Shown here: piece by piece, positions 27,440-64,000 of the stretch | Position numbering within the stretch: the first letter of the stretch is position 1 | Layout: each line of letters starts with the position of its first letter | NCBI GenBank assembly: GCA_965202585.1 | Contig: CBDBBG010000067.1 | Span: forward strand, 1-64,000 | Length of the DNA: 64,000 nt | Reading direction: 5' to 3' | Origin: Thalia democratica | Taxonomy: Eukaryota | Position numbers and translations under genes: made by a program | The notes under the pieces: generated by a model | Told to the model about the DNA's origin: nothing | Database searches by the model: none | What the model saw: the letters and a program-made list of their open reading frames with translations, nothing else

Positions 27440-28039
27440 TTAGCTTTTCCAATAAATCCGACTATCGACCTTCACGTAGAATGTTGAATACCCGAAGTCA
27501 ATCAGGTAGATCGTGTTTTGATCGAACAATCCTGTCATGAGGTTCTCGGATTTGATGTCGTTGTGAACGATGCCACAGCTGTGAACGTGATTCAGTATTT
27601 TCAACACTTGCAAGGCTACCTTCACCGTGGTCTTCAACGAAAACTTGTCCTTTCTCGTCTCTTCTCTTTTATCAAACAGGTCCTTTCCGAGTATTTCGAC
27701 AACAAAACTCTGCCTTTCCTCATGAACAAATCTCGGACCGATCTTCGGAATGCCGCGAACGTTTTCCTGTTGGAGAATTTTCAGGAACTCGTACTCCCGC
27801 AAAATGTATTTGTCTTTGCTTTGAGCTGACGAAGTCTTGACCACGACATGTTTGTTTTTATAAGTGGCGTTGTACACGCAGCCGCACCCTCCTTCTTCTA
27901 ACAACTCTTTCACTACTAAATCTTCTCTGTCAAACAAAATTGGTTTTTTCAATTTTTTTTCTGAATCTTCTTCCGACGTTTTGCTGGTTTCTTCGTCGGA
28001 ATTTCGTGGTGCTAAGTATTTTTCTTCGTTTTGTTTCAT
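27440..28039 (-). CDS. Truncated CK1-like kinase, type A (199 aa)
   Basis: Protein identical to 1189-1788. Confidence 0.8.
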   Translation of the reverse strand: MKQNEEKYLAPRNSDEETSKTSEEDSEKKLKKPILFDREDLVVKELLEEGGCGCVYNATYKNKHVVVKTSSAQSKDKYILREYEFLKILQQENVRGIPKIGPRFVHEERQSFVVEILGKDLFDKREETRKDKFSLKTTVKVALQVLKILNHVHSCGIVHNDIKSENLMTGLFDQNTIYLIDFGYSTFYVKVDSRIYWKS

Positions 28040-28897
28040 AGCTTTATTATAGATTATTATCTTTAAAAAAAAAAACTTAAAATTATTTAGTGAATTATAT
28101 TGCTATTGTAATTGAATGTCAAACTTTAATTAACAATTAATTTTAAACTCAGAAAGAAACATTTTATTGAGAATAGCTATCGCTATCTATTATATAAAGA
28201 TAAGTGTGCATATATTTTACTTTCTAAATACTAGTTAAAATATATTATTTAAGAACTTGATAACAGCAACTTCGTCGAATTTTCACAAGTCGAATGTTTA
28301 GTGTTGTCAACGCAAGCTATACAAAATTATGCAAATTTTTTCAACATAAAATTGTATGATTCTATGCACATGCCTGTGGACCAAATTTTTTCCAAATAAA
28401 AGAGGATTAACTGTGCGAATACATTGAAACATCACTTTTAAATGACTTTAACCAACAAATAGCTTGTTTTTCACCATGTTTAAGTGAAAGAATTGTGAAA
28501 AACAAGCAAAAACTAAGAAAATTAGTGAAAATTCATTTTTTTGCACTTTTAAGTGGAAAATGCACTATAAAATGCTTAATAAAACAATTTTTGAACATTT
28601 AAATGTACTAAAAATACACAATTATTGCTCATGTTGGCCATGGCCTGCTTTCTAGCATGTTTTTGGGTTTGGTTGAAAAATTGAAAATATCACGCTGACG
28701 TGCTAGTTTGACCATTTTTTAAACTGGCCCATCAAACAAGGCTGATTCTTAATAGAACTCTTTTGAACTGTTATTGTGTAAATTTTCAGTCAACCTTTCA
28801 TTTTATAATTTCACAGTTTTTACAACTTCCTTAATTTTTCATTTTCTGTCCGCAGATCATCAAATTTCAGTTTAAAATATAGAAGTTTAGTAATTCA

Positions 28898-29497
28898 TTA
28901 GCTTTTCCAATAAATCCGACTATCGACCTTCACGTAGAATGTTGAATACCCGAAGTCAATCAGGTAGATCGTGTTTTGATCGAACAATCCTGTCATGAGG
29001 TTCTCGGATTTGATGTCGTTGTGAACGATGCCACAGCTGTGAACGTGATTCAGTATTTTCAACACTTGCAAGGCTACCTTCACCGTGGTCTTCAACGAAA
29101 ACTTGTCCTTTCTCGTCTCTTCTCTTTTATCAAACAGGTCCTTTCCGAGTATTTCGACAACAAAACTCTGCCTTTCCTCATGAACAAATCTCGGACCGAT
29201 CTTCGGAATGCCGCGAACGTTTTCCTGTTGGAGAATTTTCAGGAACTCGTACTCCCGCAAAATGTATTTGTCTTTGCTTTGAGCTGACGAAGTCTTGACC
29301 ACGACATGTTTGTTTTTATAAGTGGCGTTGTACACGCAGCCGCACCCTCCTTCTTCTAACAACTCTTTCACTACTAAATCTTCTCTGTCAAACAAAATTG
29401 GTTTTTTCAATTTTTTTTCTGAATCTTCTTCCGACGTTTTGCTGGTTTCTTCGTCGGAATTTCGTGGTGCTAAGTATTTTTCTTCGTTTTGTTTCAT
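28898..29497 (-). CDS. Truncated CK1-like kinase, type A (199 aa)
   Basis: Protein identical to 1189-1788. Confidence 0.8.
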   Translation of the reverse strand: MKQNEEKYLAPRNSDEETSKTSEEDSEKKLKKPILFDREDLVVKELLEEGGCGCVYNATYKNKHVVVKTSSAQSKDKYILREYEFLKILQQENVRGIPKIGPRFVHEERQSFVVEILGKDLFDKREETRKDKFSLKTTVKVALQVLKILNHVHSCGIVHNDIKSENLMTGLFDQNTIYLIDFGYSTFYVKVDSRIYWKS

Positions 29498-30355
29498 AGC
29501 TTTATTATAGATTATTATCTTTAAAAAAAAAAACTTAAAATTATTTAGTGAATTATATTGCTATTGTAATTGAATGTCAAACTTTAATTAACAATTAATT
29601 TTAAACTCAGAAAGAAACATTTTATTGAGAATAGCTATCGCTATCTATTATATAAAGATAAGTGTGCATATATTTTACTTTCTAAATACTAGTTAAAATA
29701 TATTATTTAAGAACTTGATAACAGCAACTTCGTCGAATTTTCACAAGTCGAATGTTTAGTGTTGTCAACGCAAGCTATACAAAATTATGCAAATTTTTTC
29801 AACATAAAATTGTATGATTCTATGCACATGCCTGTGGACCAAATTTTTTCCAAATAAAAGAGGATTAACTGTGCGAATACATTGAAACATCACTTTTAAA
29901 TGACTTTAACCAACAAATAGCTTGTTTTTCACCATGTTTAAGTGAAAGAATTGTGAAAAACAAGCAAAAACTAAGAAAATTAGTGAAAATTCATTTTTTT
30001 GCACTTTTAAGTGGAAAATGCACTATAAAATGCTTAATAAAACAATTTTTGAACATTTAAATGTACTAAAAATACACAATTATTGCTCATGTTGGCCATG
30101 GCCTGCTTTCTAGCATGTTTTTGGGTTTGGTTGAAAAATTGAAAATATCACGCTGACGTGCTAGTTTGACCATTTTTTAAACTGGCCCATCAAACAAGGC
30201 TGATTCTTAATAGAACTCTTTTGAACTGTTATTGTGTAAATTTTCAGTCAACCTTTCATTTTATAATTTCACAGTTTTTACAACTTCCTTAATTTTTCAT
30301 TTTCTGTCCGCAGATCATCAAATTTCAGTTTAAAATATAGAAGTTTAGTAATTCA

Positions 30356-30955
30356 TTAGCTTTTCCAATAAATCCGACTATCGACCTTCACGTAGAATGT
30401 TGAATACCCGAAGTCAATCAGGTAGATCGTGTTTTGATCGAACAATCCTGTCATGAGGTTCTCGGATTTGATGTCGTTGTGAACGATGCCACAGCTGTGA
30501 ACGTGATTCAGTATTTTCAACACTTGCAAGGCTACCTTCACCGTGGTCTTCAACGAAAACTTGTCCTTTCTCGTCTCTTCTCTTTTATCAAACAGGTCCT
30601 TTCCGAGTATTTCGACAACAAAACTCTGCCTTTCCTCATGAACAAATCTCGGACCGATCTTCGGAATGCCGCGAACGTTTTCCTGTTGGAGAATTTTCAG
30701 GAACTCGTACTCCCGCAAAATGTATTTGTCTTTGCTTTGAGCTGACGAAGTCTTGACCACGACATGTTTGTTTTTATAAGTGGCGTTGTACACGCAGCCG
30801 CACCCTCCTTCTTCTAACAACTCTTTCACTACTAAATCTTCTCTGTCAAACAAAATTGGTTTTTTCAATTTTTTTTCTGAATCTTCTTCCGACGTTTTGC
30901 TGGTTTCTTCGTCGGAATTTCGTGGTGCTAAGTATTTTTCTTCGTTTTGTTTCAT
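30356..30955 (-). CDS. Truncated CK1-like kinase, type A (199 aa)
   Basis: Protein identical to 1189-1788. Confidence 0.8.
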   Translation of the reverse strand: MKQNEEKYLAPRNSDEETSKTSEEDSEKKLKKPILFDREDLVVKELLEEGGCGCVYNATYKNKHVVVKTSSAQSKDKYILREYEFLKILQQENVRGIPKIGPRFVHEERQSFVVEILGKDLFDKREETRKDKFSLKTTVKVALQVLKILNHVHSCGIVHNDIKSENLMTGLFDQNTIYLIDFGYSTFYVKVDSRIYWKS

Positions 30956-31814
30956 AGCTTTATTATAGATTATTATCTTTAAAAAAAAAAAACTTAAAAT
31001 TATTTAGTGAATTATATTGCTATTGTAATTGAATGTCAAACTTTAATTAACAATTAATTTTAAACTCAGAAAGAAACATTTTATTGAGAATAGCTATCGC
31101 TATCTATTATATAAAGATAAGTGTGCATATATTTTACTTTCTAAATACTAGTTAAAATATATTATTTAAGAACTTGATAACAGCAACTTCGTCGAATTTT
31201 CACAAGTCGAATGTTTAGTGTTGTCAACGCAAGCTATACAAAATTATGCAAATTTTTTCAACATAAAATTGTATGATTCTATGCACATGCCTGTGGACCA
31301 AATTTTTTCCAAATAAAAGAGGATTAACTGTGCGAATACATTGAAACATCACTTTTAAATGACTTTAACCAACAAATAGCTTGTTTTTCACCATGTTTAA
31401 GTGAAAGAATTGTGAAAAACAAGCAAAAACTAAGAAAATTAGTGAAAATTCATTTTTTTGCACTTTTAAGTGGAAAATGCACTATAAAATGCTTAATAAA
31501 ACAATTTTTGAACATTTAAATGTACTAAAAATACACAATTATTGCTCATGTTGGCCATGGCCTGCTTTCTAGCATGTTTTTGGGTTTGGTTGAAAAATTG
31601 AAAATATCACGCTGACGTGCTAGTTTGACCATTTTTTAAACTGGCCCATCAAACAAGGCTGATTCTTAATAGAACTCTTTTGAACTGTTATTGTGTAAAT
31701 TTTCAGTCAACCTTTCATTTTATAATTTCACAGTTTTTACAACTTCCTTAATTTTTCATTTTCTGTCCGCAGATCATCAAATTTCAGTTTAAAATATAGA
31801 AGTTTAGTAATTCA

Positions 31815-32414
31815 TTAGCTTTTCCAATAAATCCGACTATCGACCTTCACGTAGAATGTTGAATACCCGAAGTCAATCAGGTAGATCGTGTTTTGATCGA
31901 ACAATCCTGTCATGAGGTTCTCGGATTTGATGTCGTTGTGAACGATGCCACAGCTGTGAACGTGATTCAGTATTTTCAACACTTGCAAGGCTACCTTCAC
32001 CGTGGTCTTCAACGAAAACTTGTCCTTTCTCGTCTCTTCTCTTTTATCAAACAGGTCCTTTCCGAGTATTTCGACAACAAAACTCTGCCTTTCCTCATGA
32101 ACAAATCTCGGACCGATCTTCGGAATGCCGCGAACGTTTTCCTGTTGGAGAATTTTCAGGAACTCGTACTCCCGCAAAATGTATTTGTCTTTGCTTTGAG
32201 CTGACGAAGTCTTGACCACGACATGTTTGTTTTTATAAGTGGCGTTGTACACGCAGCCGCACCCTCCTTCTTCTAACAACTCTTTCACTACTAAATCTTC
32301 TCTGTCAAACAAAATTGGTTTTTTCAATTTTTTTTCTGAATCTTCTTCCGACGTTTTGCTGGTTTCTTCGTCGGAATTTCGTGGTGCTAAGTATTTTTCT
32401 TCGTTTTGTTTCAT
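31815..32414 (-). CDS. Truncated CK1-like kinase, type A (199 aa)
   Basis: Protein identical to 1189-1788. Confidence 0.8.
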   Translation of the reverse strand: MKQNEEKYLAPRNSDEETSKTSEEDSEKKLKKPILFDREDLVVKELLEEGGCGCVYNATYKNKHVVVKTSSAQSKDKYILREYEFLKILQQENVRGIPKIGPRFVHEERQSFVVEILGKDLFDKREETRKDKFSLKTTVKVALQVLKILNHVHSCGIVHNDIKSENLMTGLFDQNTIYLIDFGYSTFYVKVDSRIYWKS

Positions 32415-33272
32415 AGCTTTATTATAGATTATTATCTTTAAAAAAAAAAACTTAAAATTATTTAGTGAATTATATTGCTATTGTAATTGAATGTCAAACT
32501 TTAATTAACAATTAATTTTAAACTCAGAAAGAAACATTTTATTGAGAATAGCTATCGCTATCTATTATATAAAGATAAGTGTGCATATATTTTACTTTCT
32601 AAATACTAGTTAAAATATATTATTTAAGAACTTGATAACAGCAACTTCGTCGAATTTTCACAAGTCGAATGTTTAGTGTTGTCAACGCAAGCTATACAAA
32701 ATTATGCAAATTTTTTCAACATAAAATTGTATGATTCTATGCACATGCCTGTGGACCAAATTTTTTCCAAATAAAAGAGGATTAACTGTGCGAATACATT
32801 GAAACATCACTTTTAAATGACTTTAACCAACAAATAGCTTGTTTTTCACCATGTTTAAGTGAAAGAATTGTGAAAAACAAGCAAAAACTAAGAAAATTAG
32901 TGAAAATTCATTTTTTTGCACTTTTAAGTGGAAAATGCACTATAAAATGCTTAATAAAACAATTTTTGAACATTTAAATGTACTAAAAATACACAATTAT
33001 TGCTCATGTTGGCCATGGCCTGCTTTCTAGCATGTTTTTGGGTTTGGTTGAAAAATTGAAAATATCACGCTGACGTGCTAGTTTGACCATTTTTTAAACT
33101 GGCCCATCAAACAAGGCTGATTCTTAATAGAACTCTTTTGAACTGTTATTGTGTAAATTTTCAGTCAACCTTTCATTTTATAATTTCACAGTTTTTACAA
33201 CTTCCTTAATTTTTCATTTTCTGTCCGCAGATCATCAAATTTCAGTTTAAAATATAGAAGTTTAGTAATTCA

Positions 33273-33872
33273 TTAGCTTTTCCAATAAATCCGACTATCG
33301 ACCTTCACGTAGAATGTTGAATACCCGAAGTCAATCAGGTAGATCGTGTTTTGATCGAACAATCCTGTCATGAGGTTCTCGGATTTGATGTCGTTGTGAA
33401 CGATGCCACAGCTGTGAACGTGATTCAGTATTTTCAACACTTGCAAGGCTACCTTCACCGTGGTCTTCAACGAAAACTTGTCCTTTCTCGTCTCTTCTCT
33501 TTTATCAAACAGGTCCTTTCCGAGTATTTCGACAACAAAACTCTGCCTTTCCTCATGAACAAATCTCGGACCGATCTTCGGAATGCCGCGAACGTTTTCC
33601 TGTTGGAGAATTTTCAGGAACTCGTACTCCCGCAAAATGTATTTGTCTTTGCTTTGAGCTGACGAAGTCTTGACCACGACATGTTTGTTTTTATAAGTGG
33701 CGTTGTACACGCAGCCGCACCCTCCTTCTTCTAACAACTCTTTCACTACTAAATCTTCTCTGTCAAACAAAATTGGTTTTTTCAATTTTTTTTCTGAATC
33801 TTCTTCCGACGTTTTGCTGGTTTCTTCGTCGGAATTTCGTGGTGCTAAGTATTTTTCTTCGTTTTGTTTCAT
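33273..33872 (-). CDS. Truncated CK1-like kinase, type A (199 aa)
   Basis: Protein identical to 1189-1788. Confidence 0.8.
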   Translation of the reverse strand: MKQNEEKYLAPRNSDEETSKTSEEDSEKKLKKPILFDREDLVVKELLEEGGCGCVYNATYKNKHVVVKTSSAQSKDKYILREYEFLKILQQENVRGIPKIGPRFVHEERQSFVVEILGKDLFDKREETRKDKFSLKTTVKVALQVLKILNHVHSCGIVHNDIKSENLMTGLFDQNTIYLIDFGYSTFYVKVDSRIYWKS

Positions 33873-34730
33873 AGCTTTATTATAGATTATTATCTTTAAA
33901 AAAAAAAACTTAAAATTATTTAGTGAATTATATTGCTATTGTAATTGAATGTCAAACTTTAATTAACAATTAATTTTAAACTCAGAAAGAAACATTTTAT
34001 TGAGAATAGCTATCGCTATCTATTATATAAAGATAAGTGTGCATATATTTTACTTTCTAAATACTAGTTAAAATATATTATTTAAGAACTTGATAACAGC
34101 AACTTCGTCGAATTTTCACAAGTCGAATGTTTAGTGTTGTCAACGCAAGCTATACAAAATTATGCAAATTTTTTCAACATAAAATTGTATGATTCTATGC
34201 ACATGCCTGTGGACCAAATTTTTTCCAAATAAAAGAGGATTAACTGTGCGAATACATTGAAACATCACTTTTAAATGACTTTAACCAACAAATAGCTTGT
34301 TTTTCACCATGTTTAAGTGAAAGAATTGTGAAAAACAAGCAAAAACTAAGAAAATTAGTGAAAATTCATTTTTTTGCACTTTTAAGTGGAAAATGCACTA
34401 TAAAATGCTTAATAAAACAATTTTTGAACATTTAAATGTACTAAAAATACACAATTATTGCTCATGTTGGCCATGGCCTGCTTTCTAGCATGTTTTTGGG
34501 TTTGGTTGAAAAATTGAAAATATCACGCTGACGTGCTAGTTTGACCATTTTTTAAACTGGCCCATCAAACAAGGCTGATTCTTAATAGAACTCTTTTGAA
34601 CTGTTATTGTGTAAATTTTCAGTCAACCTTTCATTTTATAATTTCACAGTTTTTACAACTTCCTTAATTTTTCATTTTCTGTCCGCAGATCATCAAATTT
34701 CAGTTTAAAATATAGAAGTTTAGTAATTCA

Positions 34731-35330
34731 TTAGCTTTTCCAATAAATCCGACTATCGACCTTCACGTAGAATGTTGAATACCCGAAGTCAATCAGGTAG
34801 ATCGTGTTTTGATCGAACAATCCTGTCATGAGGTTCTCGGATTTGATGTCGTTGTGAACGATGCCACAGCTGTGAACGTGATTCAGTATTTTCAACACTT
34901 GCAAGGCTACCTTCACCGTGGTCTTCAACGAAAACTTGTCCTTTCTCGTCTCTTCTCTTTTATCAAACAGGTCCTTTCCGAGTATTTCGACAACAAAACT
35001 CTGCCTTTCCTCATGAACAAATCTCGGACCGATCTTCGGAATGCCGCGAACGTTTTCCTGTTGGAGAATTTTCAGGAACTCGTACTCCCGCAAAATGTAT
35101 TTGTCTTTGCTTTGAGCTGACGAAGTCTTGACCACGACATGTTTGTTTTTATAAGTGGCGTTGTACACGCAGCCGCACCCTCCTTCTTCTAACAACTCTT
35201 TCACTACTAAATCTTCTCTGTCAAACAAAATTGGTTTTTTCAATTTTTTTTCTGAATCTTCTTCCGACGTTTTGCTGGTTTCTTCGTCGGAATTTCGTGG
35301 TGCTAAGTATTTTTCTTCGTTTTGTTTCAT
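34731..35330 (-). CDS. Truncated CK1-like kinase, type A (199 aa)
   Basis: Protein identical to 1189-1788. Confidence 0.8.
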   Translation of the reverse strand: MKQNEEKYLAPRNSDEETSKTSEEDSEKKLKKPILFDREDLVVKELLEEGGCGCVYNATYKNKHVVVKTSSAQSKDKYILREYEFLKILQQENVRGIPKIGPRFVHEERQSFVVEILGKDLFDKREETRKDKFSLKTTVKVALQVLKILNHVHSCGIVHNDIKSENLMTGLFDQNTIYLIDFGYSTFYVKVDSRIYWKS

Positions 35331-36188
35331 AGCTTTATTATAGATTATTATCTTTAAAAAAAAAAACTTAAAATTATTTAGTGAATTATATTGCTATTGT
35401 AATTGAATGTCAAACTTTAATTAACAATTAATTTTAAACTCAGAAAGAAACATTTTATTGAGAATAGCTATCGCTATCTATTATATAAAGATAAGTGTGC
35501 ATATATTTTACTTTCTAAATACTAGTTAAAATATATTATTTAAGAACTTGATAACAGCAACTTCGTCGAATTTTCACAAGTCGAATGTTTAGTGTTGTCA
35601 ACGCAAGCTATACAAAATTATGCAAATTTTTTCAACATAAAATTGTATGATTCTATGCACATGCCTGTGGACCAAATTTTTTCCAAATAAAAGAGGATTA
35701 ACTGTGCGAATACATTGAAACATCACTTTTAAATGACTTTAACCAACAAATAGCTTGTTTTTCACCATGTTTAAGTGAAAGAATTGTGAAAAACAAGCAA
35801 AAACTAAGAAAATTAGTGAAAATTCATTTTTTTGCACTTTTAAGTGGAAAATGCACTATAAAATGCTTAATAAAACAATTTTTGAACATTTAAATGTACT
35901 AAAAATACACAATTATTGCTCATGTTGGCCATGGCCTGCTTTCTAGCATGTTTTTGGGTTTGGTTGAAAAATTGAAAATATCACGCTGACGTGCTAGTTT
36001 GACCATTTTTTAAACTGGCCCATCAAACAAGGCTGATTCTTAATAGAACTCTTTTGAACTGTTATTGTGTAAATTTTCAGTCAACCTTTCATTTTATAAT
36101 TTCACAGTTTTTACAACTTCCTTAATTTTTCATTTTCTGTCCGCAGATCATCAAATTTCAGTTTAAAATATAGAAGTTTAGTAATTCA

Positions 36189-36788
36189 TTAGCTTTTCCA
36201 ATAAATCCGACTATCGACCTTCACGTAGAATGTTGAATACCCGAAGTCAATCAGGTAGATCGTGTTTTGATCGAACAATCCTGTCATGAGGTTCTCGGAT
36301 TTGATGTCGTTGTGAACGATGCCACAGCTGTGAACGTGATTCAGTATTTTCAACACTTGCAAGGCTACCTTCACCGTGGTCTTCAACGAAAACTTGTCCT
36401 TTCTCGTCTCTTCTCTTTTATCAAACAGGTCCTTTCCGAGTATTTCGACAACAAAACTCTGCCTTTCCTCATGAACAAATCTCGGACCGATCTTCGGAAT
36501 GCCGCGAACGTTTTCCTGTTGGAGAATTTTCAGGAACTCGTACTCCCGCAAAATGTATTTGTCTTTGCTTTGAGCTGACGAAGTCTTGACCACGACATGT
36601 TTGTTTTTATAAGTGGCGTTGTACACGCAGCCGCACCCTCCTTCTTCTAACAACTCTTTCACTACTAAATCTTCTCTGTCAAACAAAATTGGTTTTTTCA
36701 ATTTTTTTTCTGAATCTTCTTCCGACGTTTTGCTGGTTTCTTCGTCGGAATTTCGTGGTGCTAAGTATTTTTCTTCGTTTTGTTTCAT
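36189..36788 (-). CDS. Truncated CK1-like kinase, type A (199 aa), last A copy
   Basis: Protein identical to 1189-1788. Confidence 0.8.
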   Translation of the reverse strand: MKQNEEKYLAPRNSDEETSKTSEEDSEKKLKKPILFDREDLVVKELLEEGGCGCVYNATYKNKHVVVKTSSAQSKDKYILREYEFLKILQQENVRGIPKIGPRFVHEERQSFVVEILGKDLFDKREETRKDKFSLKTTVKVALQVLKILNHVHSCGIVHNDIKSENLMTGLFDQNTIYLIDFGYSTFYVKVDSRIYWKS

Positions 36789-37568
36789 AGCTTTATTATA
36801 GATTATTATCTTTAAAAAAAAAAACTTAAAATTATTTAGTGAATTATATTGCTATTGTAATTGAATGTCAAACTTTAATTAACAATTAATTTTAAACTCA
36901 GAAAGAAACATTTTATTGAGAATAGCTATCGCTATCTATTATATAAAGATAAGTGTGCATATATTTTACTTTCTAAATACTAGTTAAAATATATTATTTA
37001 AGAACTTGATAACAGCAACTTCGTCGAATTTTCACAAGTCGAATGTTTAGTGTTGTCAACGCAAGCTATACAAAATTATGCAAATTTTTTCAACATAAAA
37101 TTGTATGATTCTATGCACATGCCTGTGGACCAAATTTTTTCCAAATAAAAGAGGATTAACTGTATGAATACATTGAAACATCACTTTTAAATGACTTGAA
37201 GCAACAAATAGCTTGTTTTTCACCATGTTTAAGTGAAAGAATTGTGAAAAACAAGCAAAAACTAAGAAAATTAGTGAAAATTCATTTTTTTGCACTTTTA
37301 AGTGGAAAATGCACTATAAAATGCTTAATAAAACAATTTTTGAACATTTAAATGAACTAAAAATACACAATTATTGCTCATGTTGGCCATGGCCTGCTTT
37401 CTAGCATGTTTTTGGGTTTGGTTGAAAAATTGAAAATATCACGCTGACGTGCTAGTTTGACCATTTTTTAAACTGGCCCATCCAACCAGGCTGATTCTTA
37501 ATAAAACTCTTTTAAACTGTTATTGTGTAAATTTTCAGTCAACCTTTCATTTTATAATTTCACAGTTT
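36789..37568. other. Chimeric A/B spacer at the block junction
   Basis: A-type to 36993, B-type 37164-37201, A-type base at 37223, B-type from 37355. Confidence 0.85.
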
Positions 37569-38261
37569 TTACAACTTCTTTGATTTTTCATTTTCTGTCC
37601 GCATATCATCAAATTTCGGCTCCGATTTCTCAGTTTCAGGCTGTTCACTGCGCGATTCACCGCTGTGCTCGTCTCTAACGTGCTCTCCGTCTTTCACGTA
37701 GAATGTTGAATACCCGAAATCAATCAGGTAGATCGTGTTTTGATCGAATAATCCTGTCATGAGGTTCTCAGATTTGATGTCGTTGTGAACGATGCCACAG
37801 CTGTGGACGTGATTCAGTATTTTCAACACTTGCAAGGCTACCTTCACCGTGGTCTTCAACGAAAACTTGTCCTTTCTCGTCTCTTCTCTTTTATCAAACA
37901 GGTCCTTTCCGAGTTTTTCAAAAACGAAACTCTGCCTTTCCTCATGAACAAAGCTCGGACCGATCTTTGGAATGCCGCGAACGTTTTCCTGTTGGAGAAT
38001 TTTCAGGAACTCGTACTCCCGCAAAATGTATTTGTCTTTGCTTTCAGCTGATGAAGTCTTGACCACGACAGGTTTGTTTTTAAAAGTGGCGTTGTACACA
38101 CAGCCGCACCCTCCTTCTTCTAACAACTCTTTCACTACTAAATCTTCTCTGTCAAACAAAATTGGTTTTTCCGATTCTTTTTCTGAATCTTCTTTCGACG
38201 TTTTGCTGGTTTCTTCGTCGGAGTTTCGTGGTGCTAAGTGTTTTTCATCGTTTTGAAACAT
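37569..38261 (-). CDS. Truncated CK1-like kinase, type B (230 aa, charged C-terminal tail)
   Basis: Same kinase motifs as A; continues after DFG with YVKDGEHV and a charged tail ending KSKKL; no subdomains VIII-XI. Confidence 0.82.
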   Translation of the reverse strand: MFQNDEKHLAPRNSDEETSKTSKEDSEKESEKPILFDREDLVVKELLEEGGCGCVYNATFKNKPVVVKTSSAESKDKYILREYEFLKILQQENVRGIPKIGPSFVHEERQSFVFEKLGKDLFDKREETRKDKFSLKTTVKVALQVLKILNHVHSCGIVHNDIKSENLMTGLFDQNTIYLIDFGYSTFYVKDGEHVRDEHSGESRSEQPETEKSEPKFDDMRTENEKSKKL

Positions 38262-39041
38262 AGATTTATTATAGATTATTATCTTTAAAAAATTAAAAAA
38301 CTTAAAATTATTTAGTGAATTATATTGCTGTAATTGAATATCAAATTTTAATTAACAATTAATTTTAAACTCAGAAAGAAACATTTTATTGAGAATAGCT
38401 ATCGCTATCTATTATATAAAGATAAGTGTGCATATATTTTACTTTCTAAATACTAGTTAAAATATGTTATTTAAGAACTTGATAACAGCAACTTCGTCGA
38501 ATTTTCACAAGTCGAATGTTTAGTGTTGTCAACGCAAGCTATACAAAATTATGCAAATTTTTTCAACATAAAATTGTATGATTCTATGCACATGCCTGTG
38601 GACCAAATTTTTTCCAAATAAAAGAGGATTAACTGTATGAATACATTGAAACATCACTTTTAAATGACTTGAAGCAACAAATAGCTTGTTTTTCAACATG
38701 TTTAAGTGAAAGAATTGTGAAAAACAAGCAAAAACTAAGAAAATTAGTGAAAATTCATTTTTTTGCACTTTTAAGTGGAAAATGCACTATAAAATGCTTA
38801 ATAAAACAATTTTTGAACATTTAAATGAACTAAAAATACACAATTATTGCTCATGTTGGCCATGGCCTGCTTTCTAGCATGTTTTTGGGTTTGGTTGAAA
38901 AATTGAAAATATCACGCTGACGTGCTAGTTTGACCATTTTTTAAACTGGCCCATCCAACCAGGCTGATTCTTAATAAAACTCTTTTAAACTGTTATTGTG
39001 TAAATTTTCAGTCAACCTTTCATTTTATAATTTCACAGTTT

Positions 39042-39734
39042 TTACAACTTCTTTGATTTTTCATTTTCTGTCCGCATATCATCAAATTTCGGCTCCGATT
39101 TCTCAGTTTCAGGCTGTTCACTGCGCGATTCACCGCTGTGCTCGTCTCTAACGTGCTCTCCGTCTTTCACGTAGAATGTTGAATACCCGAAATCAATCAG
39201 GTAGATCGTGTTTTGATCGAATAATCCTGTCATGAGGTTCTCAGATTTGATGTCGTTGTGAACGATGCCACAGCTGTGGACTTGATTCAGTATTTTCAAC
39301 ACTTGCAAGGCTACCTTCACCGTGGTCTTCAACGAAAACTTGTCCTTTCTCGTCTCTTCTCTTTTATCAAACAGGTCCTTTCCGAGTTTTTCAAAAACGA
39401 AACTCTGCCTTTCCTCATGAACAAAGCTCGGACCGATCTTTGGAATGCCGCGAACGTTTTCCTGTTGGAGAATTTTCAGGAACTCGTACTCCCGCAAAAT
39501 GTATTTGTCTTTGCTTTCAGCTGATGAAGTCTTGACCACGACAGGTTTGTTTTTAAAAGTGGCGTTGTACACACAGCCGCACCCTCCTTCTTCTAACAAC
39601 TCTTTCACTACTAAATCTTCTCTGTCAAACAAAATTGGTTTTTCCGATTCTTTTTCTGAATCTTCTTTCGACGTTTTGCTGGTTTCTTCGTCGGAGTTTC
39701 GTGGTGCTAAGTGTTTTTCATCGTTTTGAAACAT
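39042..39734 (-). CDS. Truncated CK1-like kinase, type B (230 aa), H151Q variant
   Basis: Same as 37569-38261 except the SNP at 39282. Confidence 0.82.
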   Translation of the reverse strand: MFQNDEKHLAPRNSDEETSKTSKEDSEKESEKPILFDREDLVVKELLEEGGCGCVYNATFKNKPVVVKTSSAESKDKYILREYEFLKILQQENVRGIPKIGPSFVHEERQSFVFEKLGKDLFDKREETRKDKFSLKTTVKVALQVLKILNQVHSCGIVHNDIKSENLMTGLFDQNTIYLIDFGYSTFYVKDGEHVRDEHSGESRSEQPETEKSEPKFDDMRTENEKSKKL

Positions 39735-40514
39735 AGATTTATTATAGATTATTATCTTTAAAAAATTAAAAAACTTAAAATTATTTAGTGAATTATATTG
39801 CTGTAATTGAATATCAAATTTTAATTAACAATTAATTTTAAACTCAGAAAGAAACATTTTATTGAGAATAGCTATCGCTATCTATTATATAAAGATAAGT
39901 GTGCATATATTTTACTTTCTAAATACTAGTTAAAATATGTTATTTAAGAACTTGATAACAGCAACTTCGTCGAATTTTCACAAGTCGAATGTTTAGTGTT
40001 GTCAACGCAAGCTATACAAAATTATGCAAATTTTTTCAACATAAAATTGTATGATTCTATGCACATGCCTGTGGACCAAATTTTTTCCAAATAAAAGAGG
40101 ATTAACTGTATGAATACATTGAAACATCACTTTTAAATGACTTGAAGCAACAAATAGCTTGTTTTTCAACATGTTTAAGTGAAAGAATTGTGAAAAACAA
40201 GCAAAAACTAAGAAAATTAGTGAAAATTCATTTTTTTGCACTTTTAAGTGGAAAATGCACTATAAAATGCTTAATAAAACAATTTTTGAACATTTAAATG
40301 AACTAAAAATACACAATTATTGCTCATGTTGGCCATGGCCTGCTTTCTAGCATGTTTTTGGGTTTGGTTGAAAAATTGAAAATATCACGCTGACGTGCTA
40401 GTTTGACCATTTTTTAAACTGGCCCATCCAACCAGGCTGATTCTTAATAAAACTCTTTTAAACTGTTATTGTGTAAATTTTCAGTCAACCTTTCATTTTA
40501 TAATTTCACAGTTT

Positions 40515-41207
40515 TTACAACTTCTTTGATTTTTCATTTTCTGTCCGCATATCATCAAATTTCGGCTCCGATTTCTCAGTTTCAGGCTGTTCACTGCGCG
40601 ATTCACCGCTGTGCTCGTCTCTAACGTGCTCTCCGTCTTTCACGTAGAATGTTGAATACCCGAAATCAATCAGGTAGATCGTGTTTTGATCGAATAATCC
40701 TGTCATGAGGTTCTCAGATTTGATGTCGTTGTGAACGATGCCACAGCTGTGGACGTGATTCAGTATTTTCAACACTTGCAAGGCTACCTTCACCGTGGTC
40801 TTCAACGAAAACTTGTCCTTTCTCGTCTCTTCTCTTTTATCAAACAGGTCCTTTCCGAGTTTTTCAAAAACGAAACTCTGCCTTTCCTCATGAACAAAGC
40901 TCGGACCGATCTTTGGAATGCCGCGAACGTTTTCCTGTTGGAGAATTTTCAGGAACTCGTACTCCCGCAAAATGTATTTGTCTTTGCTTTCAGCTGATGA
41001 AGTCTTGACCACGACAGGTTTGTTTTTAAAAGTGGCGTTGTACACACAGCCGCACCCTCCTTCTTCTAACAACTCTTTCACTACTAAATCTTCTCTGTCA
41101 AACAAAATTGGTTTTTCCGATTCTTTTTCTGAATCTTCTTTCGACGTTTTGCTGGTTTCTTCGTCGGAGTTTCGTGGTGCTAAGTGTTTTTCATCGTTTT
41201 GAAACAT
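40515..41207 (-). CDS. Truncated CK1-like kinase, type B (230 aa)
   Basis: Protein identical to 37569-38261. Confidence 0.82.
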   Translation of the reverse strand: MFQNDEKHLAPRNSDEETSKTSKEDSEKESEKPILFDREDLVVKELLEEGGCGCVYNATFKNKPVVVKTSSAESKDKYILREYEFLKILQQENVRGIPKIGPSFVHEERQSFVFEKLGKDLFDKREETRKDKFSLKTTVKVALQVLKILNHVHSCGIVHNDIKSENLMTGLFDQNTIYLIDFGYSTFYVKDGEHVRDEHSGESRSEQPETEKSEPKFDDMRTENEKSKKL

Positions 41208-41987
41208 AGATTTATTATAGATTATTATCTTTAAAAAATTAAAAAACTTAAAATTATTTAGTGAATTATATTGCTGTAATTGAATATCAAATTTTAATTA
41301 ACAATTAATTTTAAACTCAGAAAGAAACATTTTATTGAGAATAGCTATCGCTATCTATTATATAAAGATAAGTGTGCATATATTTTACTTTCTAAATACT
41401 AGTTAAAATATGTTATTTAAGAACTTGATAACAGCAACTTCGTCGAATTTTCACAAGTCGAATGTTTAGTGTTGTCAACGCAAGCTATACAAAATTATGC
41501 AAATTTTTTCAACATAAAATTGTATGATTCTATGCACATGCCTGTGGACCAAATTTTTTCCAAATAAAAGAGGATTAACTGTATGAATACATTGAAACAT
41601 CACTTTTAAATGACTTGAAGCAACAAATAGCTTGTTTTTCAACATGTTTAAGTGAAAGAATTGTGAAAAACAAGCAAAAACTAAGAAAATTAGTGAAAAT
41701 TCATTTTTTTGCACTTTTAAGTGGAAAATGCACTATAAAATGCTTAATAAAACAATTTTTGAACATTTAAATGAACTAAAAATACACAATTATTGCTCAT
41801 GTTGGCCATGGCCTGCTTTCTAGCATGTTTTTGGGTTTGGTTGAAAAATTGAAAATATCACGCTGACGTGCTAGTTTGACCATTTTTTAAACTGGCCCAT
41901 CCAACCAGGCTGATTCTTAATAAAACTCTTTTAAACTGTTATTGTGTAAATTTTCAGTCAACCTTTCATTTTATAATTTCACAGTTT

Positions 41988-42680
41988 TTACAACTTCTTT
42001 GATTTTTCATTTTCTGTCCGCATATCATCAAATTTCGGCTCCGATTTCTCAGTTTCAGGCTGTTCACTGCGCGATTCACCGCTGTGCTCGTCTCTAACGT
42101 GCTCTCCGTCTTTCACGTAGAATGTTGAATACCCGAAATCAATCAGGTAGATCGTGTTTTGATCGAATAATCCTGTCATGAGGTTCTCAGATTTGATGTC
42201 GTTGTGAACGATGCCACAGCTGTGGACGTGATTCAGTATTTTCAACACTTGCAAGGCTACCTTCACCGTGGTCTTCAACGAAAACTTGTCCTTTCTCGTC
42301 TCTTCTCTTTTATCAAACAGGTCCTTTCCGAGTTTTTCAAAAACGAAACTCTGCCTTTCCTCATGAACAAAGCTCGGACCGATCTTTGGAATGCCGCGAA
42401 CGTTTTCCTGTTGGAGAATTTTCAGGAACTCGTACTCCCGCAAAATGTATTTGTCTTTGCTTTCAGCTGATGAAGTCTTGACCACGACAGGTTTGTTTTT
42501 AAAAGTGGCGTTGTACACACAGCCGCACCCTCCTTCTTCTAACAACTCTTTCACTACTAAATCTTCTCTGTCAAACAAAATTGGTTTTTCCGATTCTTTT
42601 TCTGAATCTTCTTTCGACGTTTTGCTGGTTTCTTCGTCGGAGTTTCGTGGTGCTAAGTGTTTTTCATCGTTTTGAAACAT
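41988..42680 (-). CDS. Truncated CK1-like kinase, type B (230 aa)
   Basis: Protein identical to 37569-38261. Confidence 0.82.
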   Translation of the reverse strand: MFQNDEKHLAPRNSDEETSKTSKEDSEKESEKPILFDREDLVVKELLEEGGCGCVYNATFKNKPVVVKTSSAESKDKYILREYEFLKILQQENVRGIPKIGPSFVHEERQSFVFEKLGKDLFDKREETRKDKFSLKTTVKVALQVLKILNHVHSCGIVHNDIKSENLMTGLFDQNTIYLIDFGYSTFYVKDGEHVRDEHSGESRSEQPETEKSEPKFDDMRTENEKSKKL

Positions 42681-43460
42681 AGATTTATTATAGATTATTA
42701 TCTTTAAAAAATTAAAAAACTTAAAATTATTTAGTGAATTATATTGCTGTAATTGAATATCAAATTTTAATTAACAATTAATTTTAAACTCAGAAAGAAA
42801 CATTTTATTGAGAATAGCTATCGCTATCTATTATATAAAGATAAGTGTGCATATATTTTACTTTCTAAATACTAGTTAAAATATGTTATTTAAGAACTTG
42901 ATAACAGCAACTTCGTCGAATTTTCACAAGTCGAATGTTTAGTGTTGTCAACGCAAGCTATACAAAATTATGCAAATTTTTTCAACATAAAATTGTATGA
43001 TTCTATGCACATGCCTGTGGACCAAATTTTTTCCAAATAAAAGAGGATTAACTGTATGAATACATTGAAACATCACTTTTAAATGACTTGAAGCAACAAA
43101 TAGCTTGTTTTTCAACATGTTTAAGTGAAAGAATTGTGAAAAACAAGCAAAAACTAAGAAAATTAGTGAAAATTCATTTTTTTGCACTTTTAAGTGGAAA
43201 ATGCACTATAAAATGCTTAATAAAACAATTTTTGAACATTTAAATGAACTAAAAATACACAATTATTGCTCATGTTGGCCATGGCCTGCTTTCTAGCATG
43301 TTTTTGGGTTTGGTTGAAAAATTGAAAATATCACGCTGACGTGCTAGTTTGACCATTTTTTAAACTGGCCCATCCAACCAGGCTGATTCTTAATAAAACT
43401 CTTTTAAACTGTTATTGTGTAAATTTTCAGTCAACCTTTCATTTTATAATTTCACAGTTT

Positions 43461-44153
43461 TTACAACTTCTTTGATTTTTCATTTTCTGTCCGCATATCA
43501 TCAAATTTCGGCTCCGATTTCTCAGTTTCAGGCTGTTCACTGCGCGATTCACCGCTGTGCTCGTCTCTAACGTGCTCTCCGTCTTTCACGTAGAATGTTG
43601 AATACCCGAAATCAATCAGGTAGATCGTGTTTTGATCGAATAATCCTGTCATGAGGTTCTCAGATTTGATGTCGTTGTGAACGATGCCACAGCTGTGGAC
43701 GTGATTCAGTATTTTCAACACTTGCAAGGCTACCTTCACCGTGGTCTTCAACGAAAACTTGTCCTTTCTCGTCTCTTCTCTTTTATCAAACAGGTCCTTT
43801 CCGAGTTTTTCAAAAACGAAACTCTGCCTTTCCTCATGAACAAAGCTCGGACCGATCTTTGGAATGCCGCGAACGTTTTCCTGTTGGAGAATTTTCAGGA
43901 ACTCGTACTCCCGCAAAATGTATTTGTCTTTGCTTTCAGCTGATGAAGTCTTGACCACGACAGGTTTGTTTTTAAAAGTGGCGTTGTACACACAGCCGCA
44001 CCCTCCTTCTTCTAACAACTCTTTCACTACTAAATCTTCTCTGTCAAACAAAATTGGTTTTTCCGATTCTTTTTCTGAATCTTCTTTCGACGTTTTGCTG
44101 GTTTCTTCGTCGGAGTTTCGTGGTGCTAAGTGTTTTTCATCGTTTTGAAACAT
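43461..44153 (-). CDS. Truncated CK1-like kinase, type B (230 aa)
   Basis: Protein identical to 37569-38261. Confidence 0.82.
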   Translation of the reverse strand: MFQNDEKHLAPRNSDEETSKTSKEDSEKESEKPILFDREDLVVKELLEEGGCGCVYNATFKNKPVVVKTSSAESKDKYILREYEFLKILQQENVRGIPKIGPSFVHEERQSFVFEKLGKDLFDKREETRKDKFSLKTTVKVALQVLKILNHVHSCGIVHNDIKSENLMTGLFDQNTIYLIDFGYSTFYVKDGEHVRDEHSGESRSEQPETEKSEPKFDDMRTENEKSKKL

Positions 44154-44933
44154 AGATTTATTATAGATTATTATCTTTAAAAAATTAAAAAACTTAAAAT
44201 TATTTAGTGAATTATATTGCTGTAATTGAATATCAAATTTTAATTAACAATTAATTTTAAACTCAGAAAGAAACATTTTATTGAGAATAGCTATCGCTAT
44301 CTATTATATAAAGATAAGTGTGCATATATTTTACTTTCTAAATACTAGTTAAAATATGTTATTTAAGAACTTGATAACAGCAACTTCGTCGAATTTTCAC
44401 AAGTCGAATGTTTAGTGTTGTCAACGCAAGCTATACAAAATTATGCAAATTTTTTCAACATAAAATTGTATGATTCTATGCACATGCCTGTGGACCAAAT
44501 TTTTTCCAAATAAAAGAGGATTAACTGTATGAATACATTGAAACATCACTTTTAAATGACTTGAAGCAACAAATAGCTTGTTTTTCAACATGTTTAAGTG
44601 AAAGAATTGTGAAAAACAAGCAAAAACTAAGAAAATTAGTGAAAATTCATTTTTTTGCACTTTTAAGTGGAAAATGCACTATAAAATGCTTAATAAAACA
44701 ATTTTTGAACATTTAAATGAACTAAAAATACACAATTATTGCTCATGTTGGCCATGGCCTGCTTTCTAGCATGTTTTTGGGTTTGGTTGAAAAATTGAAA
44801 ATATCACGCTGACGTGCTAGTTTGACCATTTTTTAAACTGGCCCATCCAACCAGGCTGATTCTTAATAAAACTCTTTTAAACTGTTATTGTGTAAATTTT
44901 CAGTCAACCTTTCATTTTATAATTTCACAGTTT

Positions 44934-45626
44934 TTACAACTTCTTTGATTTTTCATTTTCTGTCCGCATATCATCAAATTTCGGCTCCGATTTCTCAGTT
45001 TCAGGCTGTTCACTGCGCGATTCACCGCTGTGCTCGTCTCTAACGTGCTCTCCGTCTTTCACGTAGAATGTTGAATACCCGAAATCAATCAGGTAGATCG
45101 TGTTTTGATCGAATAATCCTGTCATGAGGTTCTCAGATTTGATGTCGTTGTGAACGATGCCACAGCTGTGGACGTGATTCAGTATTTTCAACACTTGCAA
45201 GGCTACCTTCACCGTGGTCTTCAACGAAAACTTGTCCTTTCTCGTCTCTTCTCTTTTATCAAACAGGTCCTTTCCGAGTTTTTCAAAAACGAAACTCTGC
45301 CTTTCCTCATGAACAAAGCTCGGACCGATCTTTGGAATGCCGCGAACGTTTTCCTGTTGGAGAATTTTCAGGAACTCGTACTCCCGCAAAATGTATTTGT
45401 CTTTGCTTTCAGCTGATGAAGTCTTGACCACGACAGGTTTGTTTTTAAAAGTGGCGTTGTACACACAGCCGCACCCTCCTTCTTCTAACAACTCTTTCAC
45501 TACTAAATCTTCTCTGTCAAACAAAATTGGTTTTTCCGATTCTTTTTCTGAATCTTCTTTCGACGTTTTGCTGGTTTCTTCGTCGGAGTTTCGTGGTGCT
45601 AAGTGTTTTTCATCGTTTTGAAACAT
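44934..45626 (-). CDS. Truncated CK1-like kinase, type B (230 aa)
   Basis: Protein identical to 37569-38261. Confidence 0.82.
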   Translation of the reverse strand: MFQNDEKHLAPRNSDEETSKTSKEDSEKESEKPILFDREDLVVKELLEEGGCGCVYNATFKNKPVVVKTSSAESKDKYILREYEFLKILQQENVRGIPKIGPSFVHEERQSFVFEKLGKDLFDKREETRKDKFSLKTTVKVALQVLKILNHVHSCGIVHNDIKSENLMTGLFDQNTIYLIDFGYSTFYVKDGEHVRDEHSGESRSEQPETEKSEPKFDDMRTENEKSKKL

Positions 45627-46406
45627 AGATTTATTATAGATTATTATCTTTAAAAAATTAAAAAACTTAAAATTATTTAGTGAATTATATTGCTGTAATT
45701 GAATATCAAATTTTAATTAACAATTAATTTTAAACTCAGAAAGAAACATTTTATTGAGAATAGCTATCGCTATCTATTATATAAAGATAAGTGTGCATAT
45801 ATTTTACTTTCTAAATACTAGTTAAAATATGTTATTTAAGAACTTGATAACAGCAACTTCGTCGAATTTTCACAAGTCGAATGTTTAGTGTTGTCAACGC
45901 AAGCTATACAAAATTATGCAAATTTTTTCAACATAAAATTGTATGATTCTATGCACATGCCTGTGGACCAAATTTTTTCCAAATAAAAGAGGATTAACTG
46001 TATGAATACATTGAAACATCACTTTTAAATGACTTGAAGCAACAAATAGCTTGTTTTTCAACATGTTTAAGTGAAAGAATTGTGAAAAACAAGCAAAAAC
46101 TAAGAAAATTAGTGAAAATTCATTTTTTTGCACTTTTAAGTGGAAAATGCACTATAAAATGCTTAATAAAACAATTTTTGAACATTTAAATGAACTAAAA
46201 ATACACAATTATTGCTCATGTTGGCCATGGCCTGCTTTCTAGCATGTTTTTGGGTTTGGTTGAAAAATTGAAAATATCACGCTGACGTGCTAGTTTGACC
46301 ATTTTTTAAACTGGCCCATCCAACCAGGCTGATTCTTAATAAAACTCTTTTAAACTGTTATTGTGTAAATTTTCAGTCAACCTTTCATTTTATAATTTCA
46401 CAGTTT

Positions 46407-47099
46407 TTACAACTTCTTTGATTTTTCATTTTCTGTCCGCATATCATCAAATTTCGGCTCCGATTTCTCAGTTTCAGGCTGTTCACTGCGCGATTCACCG
46501 CTGTGCTCGTCTCTAACGTGCTCTCCGTCTTTCACGTAGAATGTTGAATACCCGAAATCAATCAGGTAGATCGTGTTTTGATCGAATAATCCTGTCATGA
46601 GGTTCTCAGATTTGATGTCGTTGTGAACGATGCCACAGCTGTGGACGTGATTCAGTATTTTCAACACTTGCAAGGCTACCTTCACCGTGGTCTTCAACGA
46701 AAACTTGTCCTTTCTCGTCTCTTCTCTTTTATCAAACAGGTCCTTTCCGAGTTTTTCAAAAACGAAACTCTGCCTTTCCTCATGAACAAAGCTCGGACCG
46801 ATCTTTGGAATGCCGCGAACGTTTTCCTGTTGGAGAATTTTCAGGAACTCGTACTCCCGCAAAATGTATTTGTCTTTGCTTTCAGCTGATGAAGTCTTGA
46901 CCACGACAGGTTTGTTTTTAAAAGTGGCGTTGTACACACAGCCGCACCCTCCTTCTTCTAACAACTCTTTCACTACTAAATCTTCTCTGTCAAACAAAAT
47001 TGGTTTTTCCGATTCTTTTTCTGAATCTTCTTTCGACGTTTTGCTGGTTTCTTCGTCGGAGTTTCGTGGTGCTAAGTGTTTTTCATCGTTTTGAAACAT
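46407..47099 (-). CDS. Truncated CK1-like kinase, type B (230 aa)
   Basis: Protein identical to 37569-38261. Confidence 0.82.
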   Translation of the reverse strand: MFQNDEKHLAPRNSDEETSKTSKEDSEKESEKPILFDREDLVVKELLEEGGCGCVYNATFKNKPVVVKTSSAESKDKYILREYEFLKILQQENVRGIPKIGPSFVHEERQSFVFEKLGKDLFDKREETRKDKFSLKTTVKVALQVLKILNHVHSCGIVHNDIKSENLMTGLFDQNTIYLIDFGYSTFYVKDGEHVRDEHSGESRSEQPETEKSEPKFDDMRTENEKSKKL

Positions 47100-47879
47100 A
47101 GATTTATTATAGATTATTATCTTTAAAAAATTAAAAAACTTAAAATTATTTAGTGAATTATATTGCTGTAATTGAATATCAAATTTTAATTAACAATTAA
47201 TTTTAAACTCAGAAAGAAACATTTTATTGAGAATAGCTATCGCTATCTATTATATAAAGATAAGTGTGCATATATTTTACTTTCTAAATACTAGTTAAAA
47301 TATGTTATTTAAGAACTTGATAACAGCAACTTCGTCGAATTTTCACAAGTCGAATGTTTAGTGTTGTCAACGCAAGCTATACAAAATTATGCAAATTTTT
47401 TCAACATAAAATTGTATGATTCTATGCACATGCCTGTGGACCAAATTTTTTCCAAATAAAAGAGGATTAACTGTATGAATACATTGAAACATCACTTTTA
47501 AATGACTTGAAGCAACAAATAGCTTGTTTTTCAACATGTTTAAGTGAAAGAATTGTGAAAAACAAGCAAAAACTAAGAAAATTAGTGAAAATTCATTTTT
47601 TTGCACTTTTAAGTGGAAAATGCACTATAAAATGCTTAATAAAACAATTTTTGAACATTTAAATGAACTAAAAATACACAATTATTGCTCATGTTGGCCA
47701 TGGCCTGCTTTCTAGCATGTTTTTGGGTTTGGTTGAAAAATTGAAAATATCACGCTGACGTGCTAGTTTGACCATTTTTTAAACTGGCCCATCCAACCAG
47801 GCTGATTCTTAATAAAACTCTTTTAAACTGTTATTGTGTAAATTTTCAGTCAACCTTTCATTTTATAATTTCACAGTTT

Positions 47880-63302: not shown

Positions 63303-64000
63303 AGATTTATTATAGATTATTATCTTTAAAAAATTAAAAAACTTAAAATTATTTAGTGAATTATATTGCTGTAATTGAATATCAAATTTTAATTAACAAT
63401 TAATTTTAAACTCAGAAAGAAACATTTTATTGAGAATAGCTATCGCTATCTATTATATAAAGATAAGTGTGCATATATTTTACTTTCTAAATACTAGTTA
63501 AAATATGTTATTTAAGAACTTGATAACAGCAACTTCGTCGAATTTTCACAAGTCGAATGTTTAGTGTTGTCAACGCAAGCTATACAAAATTATGCAAATT
63601 TTTTCAACATAAAATTGTATGATTCTATGCACATGCCTGTGGACCAAATTTTTTCCAAATAAAAGAGGATTAACTGTATGAATACATTGAAACATCACTT
63701 TTAAATGACTTGAAGCAACAAATAGCTTGTTTTTCAACATGTTTAAGTGAAAGAATTGTGAAAAACAAGCAAAAACTAAGAAAATTAGTGAAAATTCATT
63801 TTTTTGCACTTTTAAGTGGAAAATGCACTATAAAATGCTTAATAAAACAATTTTTGAACATTTAAATGAACTAAAAATACACAATTATTGCTCATGTTGG
63901 CCATGGCCTGCTTTCTAGCATGTTTTTGGGTTTGGTTGAAAAATTGAAAATATCACGCTGACGTGCTAGTTTGACCATTTTTTAAACTGGCCCATCCAAC

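Follow-up and report, generated by a model that had tools for sequence, protein, structure and literature searches.

The locus described here raises the question why genes for a protein kinase that has lost most of its C-lobe should still carry the conserved residues of the catalytic core. The window, by which we mean the whole stretch of 64 kb that was analysed, is a single head-to-tail array on the minus strand which extends past both window ends. Twenty-five short-type units with an ORF of 199 aa are followed by 18 long-type units with an ORF of 230 aa, and each ORF covers a CK1-group kinase from its N-lobe to a point shortly past the DFG motif. A preliminary description of the first long-type ORF had offered two answers: either the half-domain is itself under selection, as a scaffold, decoy or split-kinase partner, or the constraint was inherited from full-length ancestors. 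We consider it probable that the window holds relics of a CK1-like gene, truncated twice independently and recently amplified into a gene-derived array, in which the conserved core is inherited and has not yet decayed.

The array and its truncated kinase ORFs

All 43 units point in the same direction, without inverted or antisense organisation, and the G+C content of the window is 32-35% throughout. The positions of the array, its blocks and the features of the first long-type ORF are given in Table 1. Three-frame translation of the spacer revealed no additional kinase exon, and Rfam detected no structured RNA in the three units searched. Every unit contains a TATATAA-like box (38400-38425 on the minus strand in the first long-type unit), about 150 nt upstream of the ATG, a candidate for the core promoter. 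Within the kinase ORF of every unit there are also antisense ORFs of 88 and 94 aa (37785-38256 on the plus strand, and equivalents); these are probably a by-product of codon composition.

Table 1. Positions of the array, its blocks and the features discussed in the text.
Feature	Position	Strand	Evidence and remarks
Tandem array	1..64000	-	ORF list, unit lengths, near-identity within each type
Short-type block	ORFs 1189..36788	-	25 units, period 1458-1460 nt
Variant short unit; 31 substitutions limited to ORF nt 8-456, other ~1000 nt as in its neighbours	17233..17832	-	Unit comparison
Neighbouring short-type ORF, 199 aa; deletion junction at 36214/36215	36189..36788	-	Comparison with parent
Spacer	36789..37568	-	Parental 3'UTR, intergenic and upstream region
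Long-type block	ORFs 37569..63302	-	18 units, period 1473 nt
First long-type ORF, 230 aa, open (the ORF of the preliminary description)	37569..38261	-	Pfam Pkinase, E = 4e-20, profile positions 3-153 of 263
Codons 1-40, acidic Ser-rich N-terminal extension outside the kinase domain	38142..38261	-	N:S 21:3, pLDDT ~29
Codons 41-190, kinase N-lobe, hinge, alphaD-alphaE, HNDIKSEN catalytic loop, DFG	37692..38141	-	Collinear with full-length relatives (alignment to P0019 and others)
Codons 191-204 (DGEHVRDEHSGESR), native start of activation segment, parental frame kept	37650..37691	-	Alignment with L001 and L008
20-nt deletion (parent ORF nt 613-632), upstream edge of the 32-nt remnant	37649/37650	-	L003 retains these 20 nt
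32-nt remnant of activation segment (parental SVNSLKLRNQSR), read out of frame as SEQPETEKSEP	37618..37649	-	Comparison with parent
GAAA microhomology at junction of 334-nt deletion (parent nt 665-998)	37614..37617	-	Comparison with parent; loose contig ends at 37617 and 37614
Tail codons KFDDMRTENEKSKKL and stop, 3'UTR in the full-length gene	37569..37617	-	Comparison with 3'UTR of L008 and L001

The kinase motifs were confirmed as they had been described. K68, E82, D161/K163/N166 and D181-F182-G183 are identical in the long, the short and the variant short haplotypes, the first position of the Gly-loop is E48 (Q48 in the variant short unit), and the catalytic loop reads HND. K68 is the ATP-anchoring lysine (VAIK) and E82 the alphaC glutamate, both of which are present in all haplotypes; the catalytic loop HNDIKSEN comprises residues 159-166 and the Mg-binding DFG residues 181-183.

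The loss of the C-lobe was likewise borne out, since the Pfam match is confined to positions 3-153 of the 263 in the profile and the 64 kb contain no coding sequence for alphaF-alphaI. A complete activation segment (the CK1-type GT.RY.S/SIN region) is absent: the long type continues for 14 residues past codon 190 and is then frameshifted, and the short type has none of it. The C-lobe helices alphaF-alphaI including the SRRDDLESLGY-type motif are absent from the window ORFs as well. A tblastn search of the whole window with residues 191-322 of the full-length relative P0019 found no C-lobe coding sequence except short remnants. C-lobe exons hidden behind an intron were also considered and were rejected, as both the three-frame translation of the spacer and the window-wide tblastn search were empty in this respect. 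The earlier argument that a CK1 kinase requires the activation segment and the helices F-I is judged to be sound. At the C-terminus of the long type, residues 191-204 are native, residues ~205-215 are out-of-frame SVNSLKLRNQSR codons, and 3'UTR sequence supplies the last 15 residues.

Full-length relatives and the origin of the two deletions

Relatives were searched for with a word-based protein search and were located only in marine metagenome assemblies, Tara Oceans included. The closest cluster, defined at an identity of at least 90%, includes an intact protein of 322 aa (P0019, encoded on contig L008). Over the whole kinase domain this protein can be aligned with CK1 gamma/delta/epsilon (E ~1e-37), with TTBK1/2 (E 1e-32) and more weakly with VRK, and its best PDB matches are CK1 gamma/delta/epsilon. 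More distant full-length relatives (P0004-P0011) have 268-352 aa and are 43-70% identical. An exact look-up of the three window proteins in a collection of 15 billion proteins found none of them.

Compared to the catalytic domains of the CK1 group (CK1 gamma/Gilgamesh 4nt4, CK1 delta/epsilon, TTBK1/2), P0019 has the CK1-type SRKDDLESLAY motif and a GT..F.S activation segment, and the window ORFs retain K68, E82, HxDxKxxN and DFG. In contrast to these domains, however, the window ORFs stop 7-21 native residues past DFG, without activation segment and alphaF-alphaI, and the array family has HND instead of HRD, S instead of the P of the catalytic loop, and a residue other than Gly at the first Gly-loop position. 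Full-length relatives also have HND, S164 and the non-Gly residue, which are therefore family traits and not signs of decay.

A near-full-length gene is found on contig L001. L001 and L008 match the array spacer in both their 5' and their 3' flanks, and therefore the full-length gene occupies the same kind of unit. The array family appears to be a lineage-specific, apparently intronless and tandemly arrayed CK1-group subfamily, which is so far known from marine metagenomes only.

With respect to the intact ORF of L008, whose numbering is used here for all deletion coordinates, the disabling lesion is a 369-nt deletion in the short type and a 20-nt plus a 334-nt deletion in the long type. The 369-nt deletion (nt 575-943) is a single in-frame event between two ACG triplets (microhomology). 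FYVK-D191 is thereby fused to the eight codons at the native C-terminal end, with native stop codon and 3'UTR preserved, and codon 191 was changed from D to V after the deletion. In the long type, the 334-nt deletion (nt 665-998, GAAA microhomology) eliminated the remaining C-lobe together with the stop codon and 29 nt of the 3'UTR, and the additional 20-nt deletion (nt 613-632) shifts the frame. The metagenome contig L003 is an intermediate in which the 334-nt deletion is present and the 20-nt deletion is absent, which indicates that the large deletion came first. Because each type keeps sequence that is missing from the other, the two types are independent derivatives of the full-length unit, and neither arose from the other. 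A non-homologous swap after DFG had to be rejected as the cause of the difference between long and short type; two independent deletions of a full-length parent fit instead.

A fourth architecture was observed in the Tara metagenome contig L006 (546-1310) and in P0013 (Logan). Here the kinase extends up to GMPKELA in the C-lobe and is followed by a second copy of the AGTGAACAGCC... segment and by the long-type tail. This arrangement, which comes from two independent sources and also carries a stop at codon 6 (E6*), looks as if a full-length unit and a large-deletion unit had undergone illegitimate exchange.

The unit is present in public runs of two organism labels and in many marine metagenomes. 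Both long-type junctions are crossed by a 96-nt unitig of run X1 (37593-37688, 0 mismatches, very high k-mer depth) and by a 237-nt contig of run X12 (37456-37692), and they also occur in the metagenome contigs L003 and L007. The loose contig end at 37617 continues into the parental 3'UTR, as in short or full-length units. The one at 37614 continues into KDDLESLAYNL codons, and therefore full-length units exist in the runs of the second organism label. The summed k-mer depth of the unit is 1e4-3e5, a figure that is not a copy number and that fits a very abundant repeat family. For the spacer segment 37100-37350 the summed depth is several-fold higher than for the ORF (6e4-3e5 versus 6e3-5e4 in X1 and X3), and this segment may also occur in other repeat families of the genome that are of greater abundance. 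One metatranscriptome (X23) contained no contig of the unit, which is no proof of silence, and no RNA run was among the public runs listed for the unit. Among the JGI metagenome contigs the short-type junction was not found, but neither was a 27-mer of the conserved kinase core, so that this search is uninformative on the short type in the wild.

Origin of the conserved catalytic core

The absence of stops and frameshifts through codon 190 was part of the preliminary description and is true for all 43 complete units, but the near-identity of the copies leaves almost no information in it. Seventeen long units that were compared show 2 substitutions in ~25 kb, both of them nonsynonymous. Among the short units there are no substitutions outside one conversion patch; they differ in poly-T length and, in one unit, in a few spacer indels. 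The patch is that of the variant short unit, and it is the confinement of its substitutions to one part of the ORF that indicates gene conversion. Since the divergence among units is tiny, about zero disabling mutations are expected under neutrality, and the open frames are therefore uninformative. In effect, the 43 open ORFs represent about three independent haplotypes.

Within 570 nt, 174 of the 276 informative site pairs fail the four-gamete test; recombination between units is pervasive, and the units are mosaics. The long type has an F60-P64-R81-Q91 block in common with the full-length haplotype L009 and nt 453-570 in common with L001, and nt 162-217 of the short type are shared with the long-type L007. 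A stretch of 15 nt of the 3'UTR (TAAAAAGATGCTTGA) is deleted in long, short and variant units (at 37520-37535, just downstream of GGTTGAC, and equivalents), and is present in every wild contig that covers this region (L001, L003, L006, L007 and L008). The loss of TAAAAAGATGCTTGA is thus common to both blocks, which shows homogenisation across the blocks after their C-lobe deletions. In one long unit (39042-39734) H151Q is due to the same C>A exchange at unit nt 453 as in the variant short unit 22 kb away, which is due either to conversion of a very short tract or to a mutation that occurred twice.

The differences between long and short type that had been reported could be reproduced. In codons 117-190 there are five, all of them synonymous (nt 456, 492, 513, 543 and 570, corresponding to V152, S164, L171, D181 and K190), and in codons 1-116 there are 13 amino-acid differences (codons 2, 5, 8, 23, 29, 30, 31, 60, 64, 73, 103, 114 and 116). 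The two types diverge at 21 sites in ORF nt 1-348 (6.0%), at 5 sites in nt 349-570 (2.3%) and at 17 sites in the 828 nt of shared 3'UTR and spacer (2.05%). That all five differences in codons 117-190 are synonymous has a probability of ~4e-4 under neutrality; this is very unlikely to be neutral, and hence selection acted on that divergence. At four of the five sites (456, 513, 543 and 570), the long-type state is also found in the full-length haplotypes L001, L009, L010 and L006, and at two of them in L008, and therefore these differences predate the truncation. At the fifth site (492) the two short-type haplotypes have the same state. Of the 13 amino-acid differences in codons 1-116, seven fall in the N-terminal extension (codons 1-40). 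The segregating changes of close haplotypes have an N:S ratio of 21:3 in codons 1-40, compared to 20:15 in one and 11:9 in the other half of the kinase domain, and the extension is effectively unconstrained across the cluster.

As the failures of the four-gamete test block a clean assignment of changes to branches, a branch-wise dN/dS on a tree was dropped, and pairwise NG86 estimates and counts of private changes were used. Long-term comparisons within the family give an omega of 0.2-0.3, and the short type compared to L008 gives 0.26. For the long type and the intact L008 we obtained an omega of 0.97 (Sd 3.7, Nd 14.3), a value which is based on few changes and blurred by recombination. The preliminary description had taken a branch dN/dS near 1 after the truncation as evidence against a selected half-domain; the long-type value lies close to this, as a pairwise and not a per-branch estimate.

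The private changes comprise 5 amino-acid events and no synonymous one in the long type, and 4 and 2, respectively, in the short type. Pooled, these 9-11 nonsynonymous and 2 synonymous changes match the neutral proportion of 80:20 and are unlikely at an omega of 0.25 (p = 0.01-0.03), although the events are few and recombination interferes. All private changes of both types are located within codons 1-116 and none in codons 117-190, an absence that is only partly explained by conversion or homogenisation. The kinase domain proper has received ~5 nonsynonymous changes and 1 synonymous change since the truncation, including two within-block variants, which is too few to reject constraint.

Dead relatives of the array units serve as a control. 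Among the haplotypes of the cluster with at least 90% identity for which DNA was obtained, L008 is the sole intact one. The stop E6* (GAA>TAA) is common to L001, L006 and L009, which come from three different metagenome samples, and L001 additionally carries a 1-nt deletion. The long-type L007 has a TGA at codon 50 (G50*), L003 and L004 from two samples have the same 1-nt insertion (+1 frameshift) within the codons of HND, L010 is frameshifted at the C-terminus, and L006 has the rearranged C-terminus in which the C-lobe is followed by the long-type tail after GMPKELA. The dead full-length variant with E6* has itself become widespread, be it by amplification of the unit or as a common allele. 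The dead copies are unchanged in the codons of K68, E82, D161, K163, N166 and DFG, save for one synonymous change in D181. Since the catalytic residues are invariant in dead copies too, this invariance is a property of the whole young family and not a sign of selection on the half protein. Of the two answers offered initially, inheritance of the constraint from full-length ancestors is thus favoured, by the synonymous states that predate the truncation as well as by the dead copies, and selection on the half-domain gains no evidence.

Structure prediction of the truncated form alone, which had been proposed as a further check, was performed with AlphaFold2, using the same alignment of 14 sequences for full-length P0019 and for the long truncated form. 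The model of P0019 has a mean pLDDT of 73.3 and a pTM of 0.73, and the means of 10-residue blocks over residues 41-190 are 62-91. In the truncated form the confidence collapses without the C-lobe to a mean pLDDT of 40.6 and a pTM of 0.28, with 39-68 over residues 41-190 and 27-29 in the tail, although low AlphaFold confidence does not prove that a protein is unfolded. The N-terminal extension has a pLDDT of ~29 in both models. Protein kinases rely on the alphaF helix as the anchor of their two hydrophobic spines, and their substrate site is formed by the activation segment together with alphaG-alphaI. As all of these elements are missing, we judge an autonomous, active half-domain to be unlikely.

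Explanations and comparison with known systems

According to the reading preferred here, in which the array is made of inherited relics, the ancestor would have been a unit of ~1.8 kb with an apparently intronless gene for a full-length (322 aa), divergent CK1-group kinase, itself organised in tandem arrays. Two separate microhomology-mediated deletions took the C-lobe, one of 369 nt in frame in the short type and one of 334 nt reaching into the 3'UTR, followed by the loss of 20 nt, in the long type. Each damaged unit would then have multiplied very recently into a homogeneous block, presumably by unequal crossing-over, and gene conversion keeps moving patches between the units. The clean motifs and open frames are best accounted for by purifying selection on the full-length ancestors together with too little time for decay since the amplification, and the half protein is most likely unable to fold as a stand-alone kinase. 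The organisation of the array, the deletions, the near-identity and mosaic make-up of the copies and the dead relatives with unchanged motifs are read directly from the sequences; the mechanism of spread and the non-functionality are what we infer. Two independent C-lobe losses at high copy, both with an open frame and an intact upstream region, could nevertheless hint at an advantage.

Such an advantage would exist if the truncated protein were expressed and useful, as a decoy, dominant-negative partner or scaffold for full-length CK1-like kinases, and had been amplified for dosage. The frames are open in 43 of 43 units and the upstream region is kept, both of the independent C-lobe deletions were amplified, and the types show no amino-acid difference in codons 117-190; however, open frames are uninformative in near-identical copies, and the synonymous differences in this region are older than the truncation. 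Considering also that long-type or intermediate copies from the wild carry G50* or a frameshift, that dN/dS compared to the intact relative is ~1, and that alphaF is missing and the AlphaFold2 confidence collapses, we regard a useful half kinase as unlikely. It is very unlikely that expression of the half-kinase units, for instance in the germline, yields dosage-amplified dominant-negative or decoy proteins directed against the full-length CK1-like kinases of the same array, in the manner of a Stellate- or Smok-Tcr-like selfish or sexually selected system that would here be made from a kinase truncated directly behind DFG. If true, the dominant-negative or decoy reading would explain why two independent C-lobe deletions are each found at high copy number. 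The importance of the array would rise only if the truncated product is expressed and active against its full-length relatives.

The ORF might also be incidental, with the array acting at the level of DNA or RNA or as a selfish element, be it as a source of small RNAs that regulate full-length paralogues, as a Stellate- or Smok-Tcr-like drive system or as a structural satellite. The very high summed k-mer depth in two organism-labelled runs and the homogeneous blocks, which are longer than 64 kb, would be in line with this, and Drosophila Stellate offers a precedent of an amplified kinase-related gene array with a role in the germline. We nevertheless think this quite unlikely, as the uniform direction of the 43 units leaves no inverted or antisense organisation, Rfam detected no structured RNA in three units, and a high copy number is predicted by neutral amplification by itself. 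Long near-identical arrays are hard to assemble, and the number and order of the units may be inexact. That the array or its junctions are an artefact of repeat mis-assembly is hardly credible, however, given that unitigs of the independent public runs X1 and X12 cross both long-type junctions exactly, that loose ends lie exactly at the junctions and that L003 and L007 have the same junctions.

As an array of truncated, inherited relics, the case is a fairly ordinary one. It documents a CK1-group subfamily, apparently lineage-specific and intronless, that forms large arrays in a widespread marine animal with AT-rich DNA, and the active unequal exchange, gene conversion and microhomology deletions make it a good natural system for the transition from a gene to satellite DNA. 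It also calls for caution, as dozens of "intact" ORFs with perfect catalytic motifs in a young tandem array may represent two or three haplotypes and be uninformative on selection.

A literature search for truncated CK1 arrays found nothing relevant. Gene-derived satellites and birth-and-death arrays resemble the array in their head-to-tail units (here ~1.5 kb), homogeneous blocks with sharp boundaries and conversion patches, nonsense, frameshift and deletion variants that are frequent in closely related copies, and near-zero divergence within blocks. In contrast to them, every unit of the window keeps an open frame of 199 or 230 aa and an intact upstream region, and two deletions of the same protein half were each amplified.

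Stellate and Su(Ste) of Drosophila consist of ~kilobase units, originate from a casein-kinase-related gene and are present in many copies in one lineage. The window array shares the ~kilobase units, the casein-kinase-related origin and the many copies. Stellate is derived from the regulatory subunit CK2 beta, encodes a complete protein, has a testis phenotype and is under piRNA control by the antisense Su(Ste), whereas the window array derives from a CK1-like catalytic subunit cut in half, and all of its units are co-oriented. The mouse t-complex responder Smok1-Tcr is a rearranged, partly deleted gene of an amplified sperm-kinase family, the altered product of which has a biological effect. 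It is a single chimeric gene that keeps a kinase domain with reduced activity, and its function was proven genetically. The window array, which is known from its sequence alone, resembles Smok1-Tcr in being built from a rearranged, partly deleted kinase gene of an amplified family.
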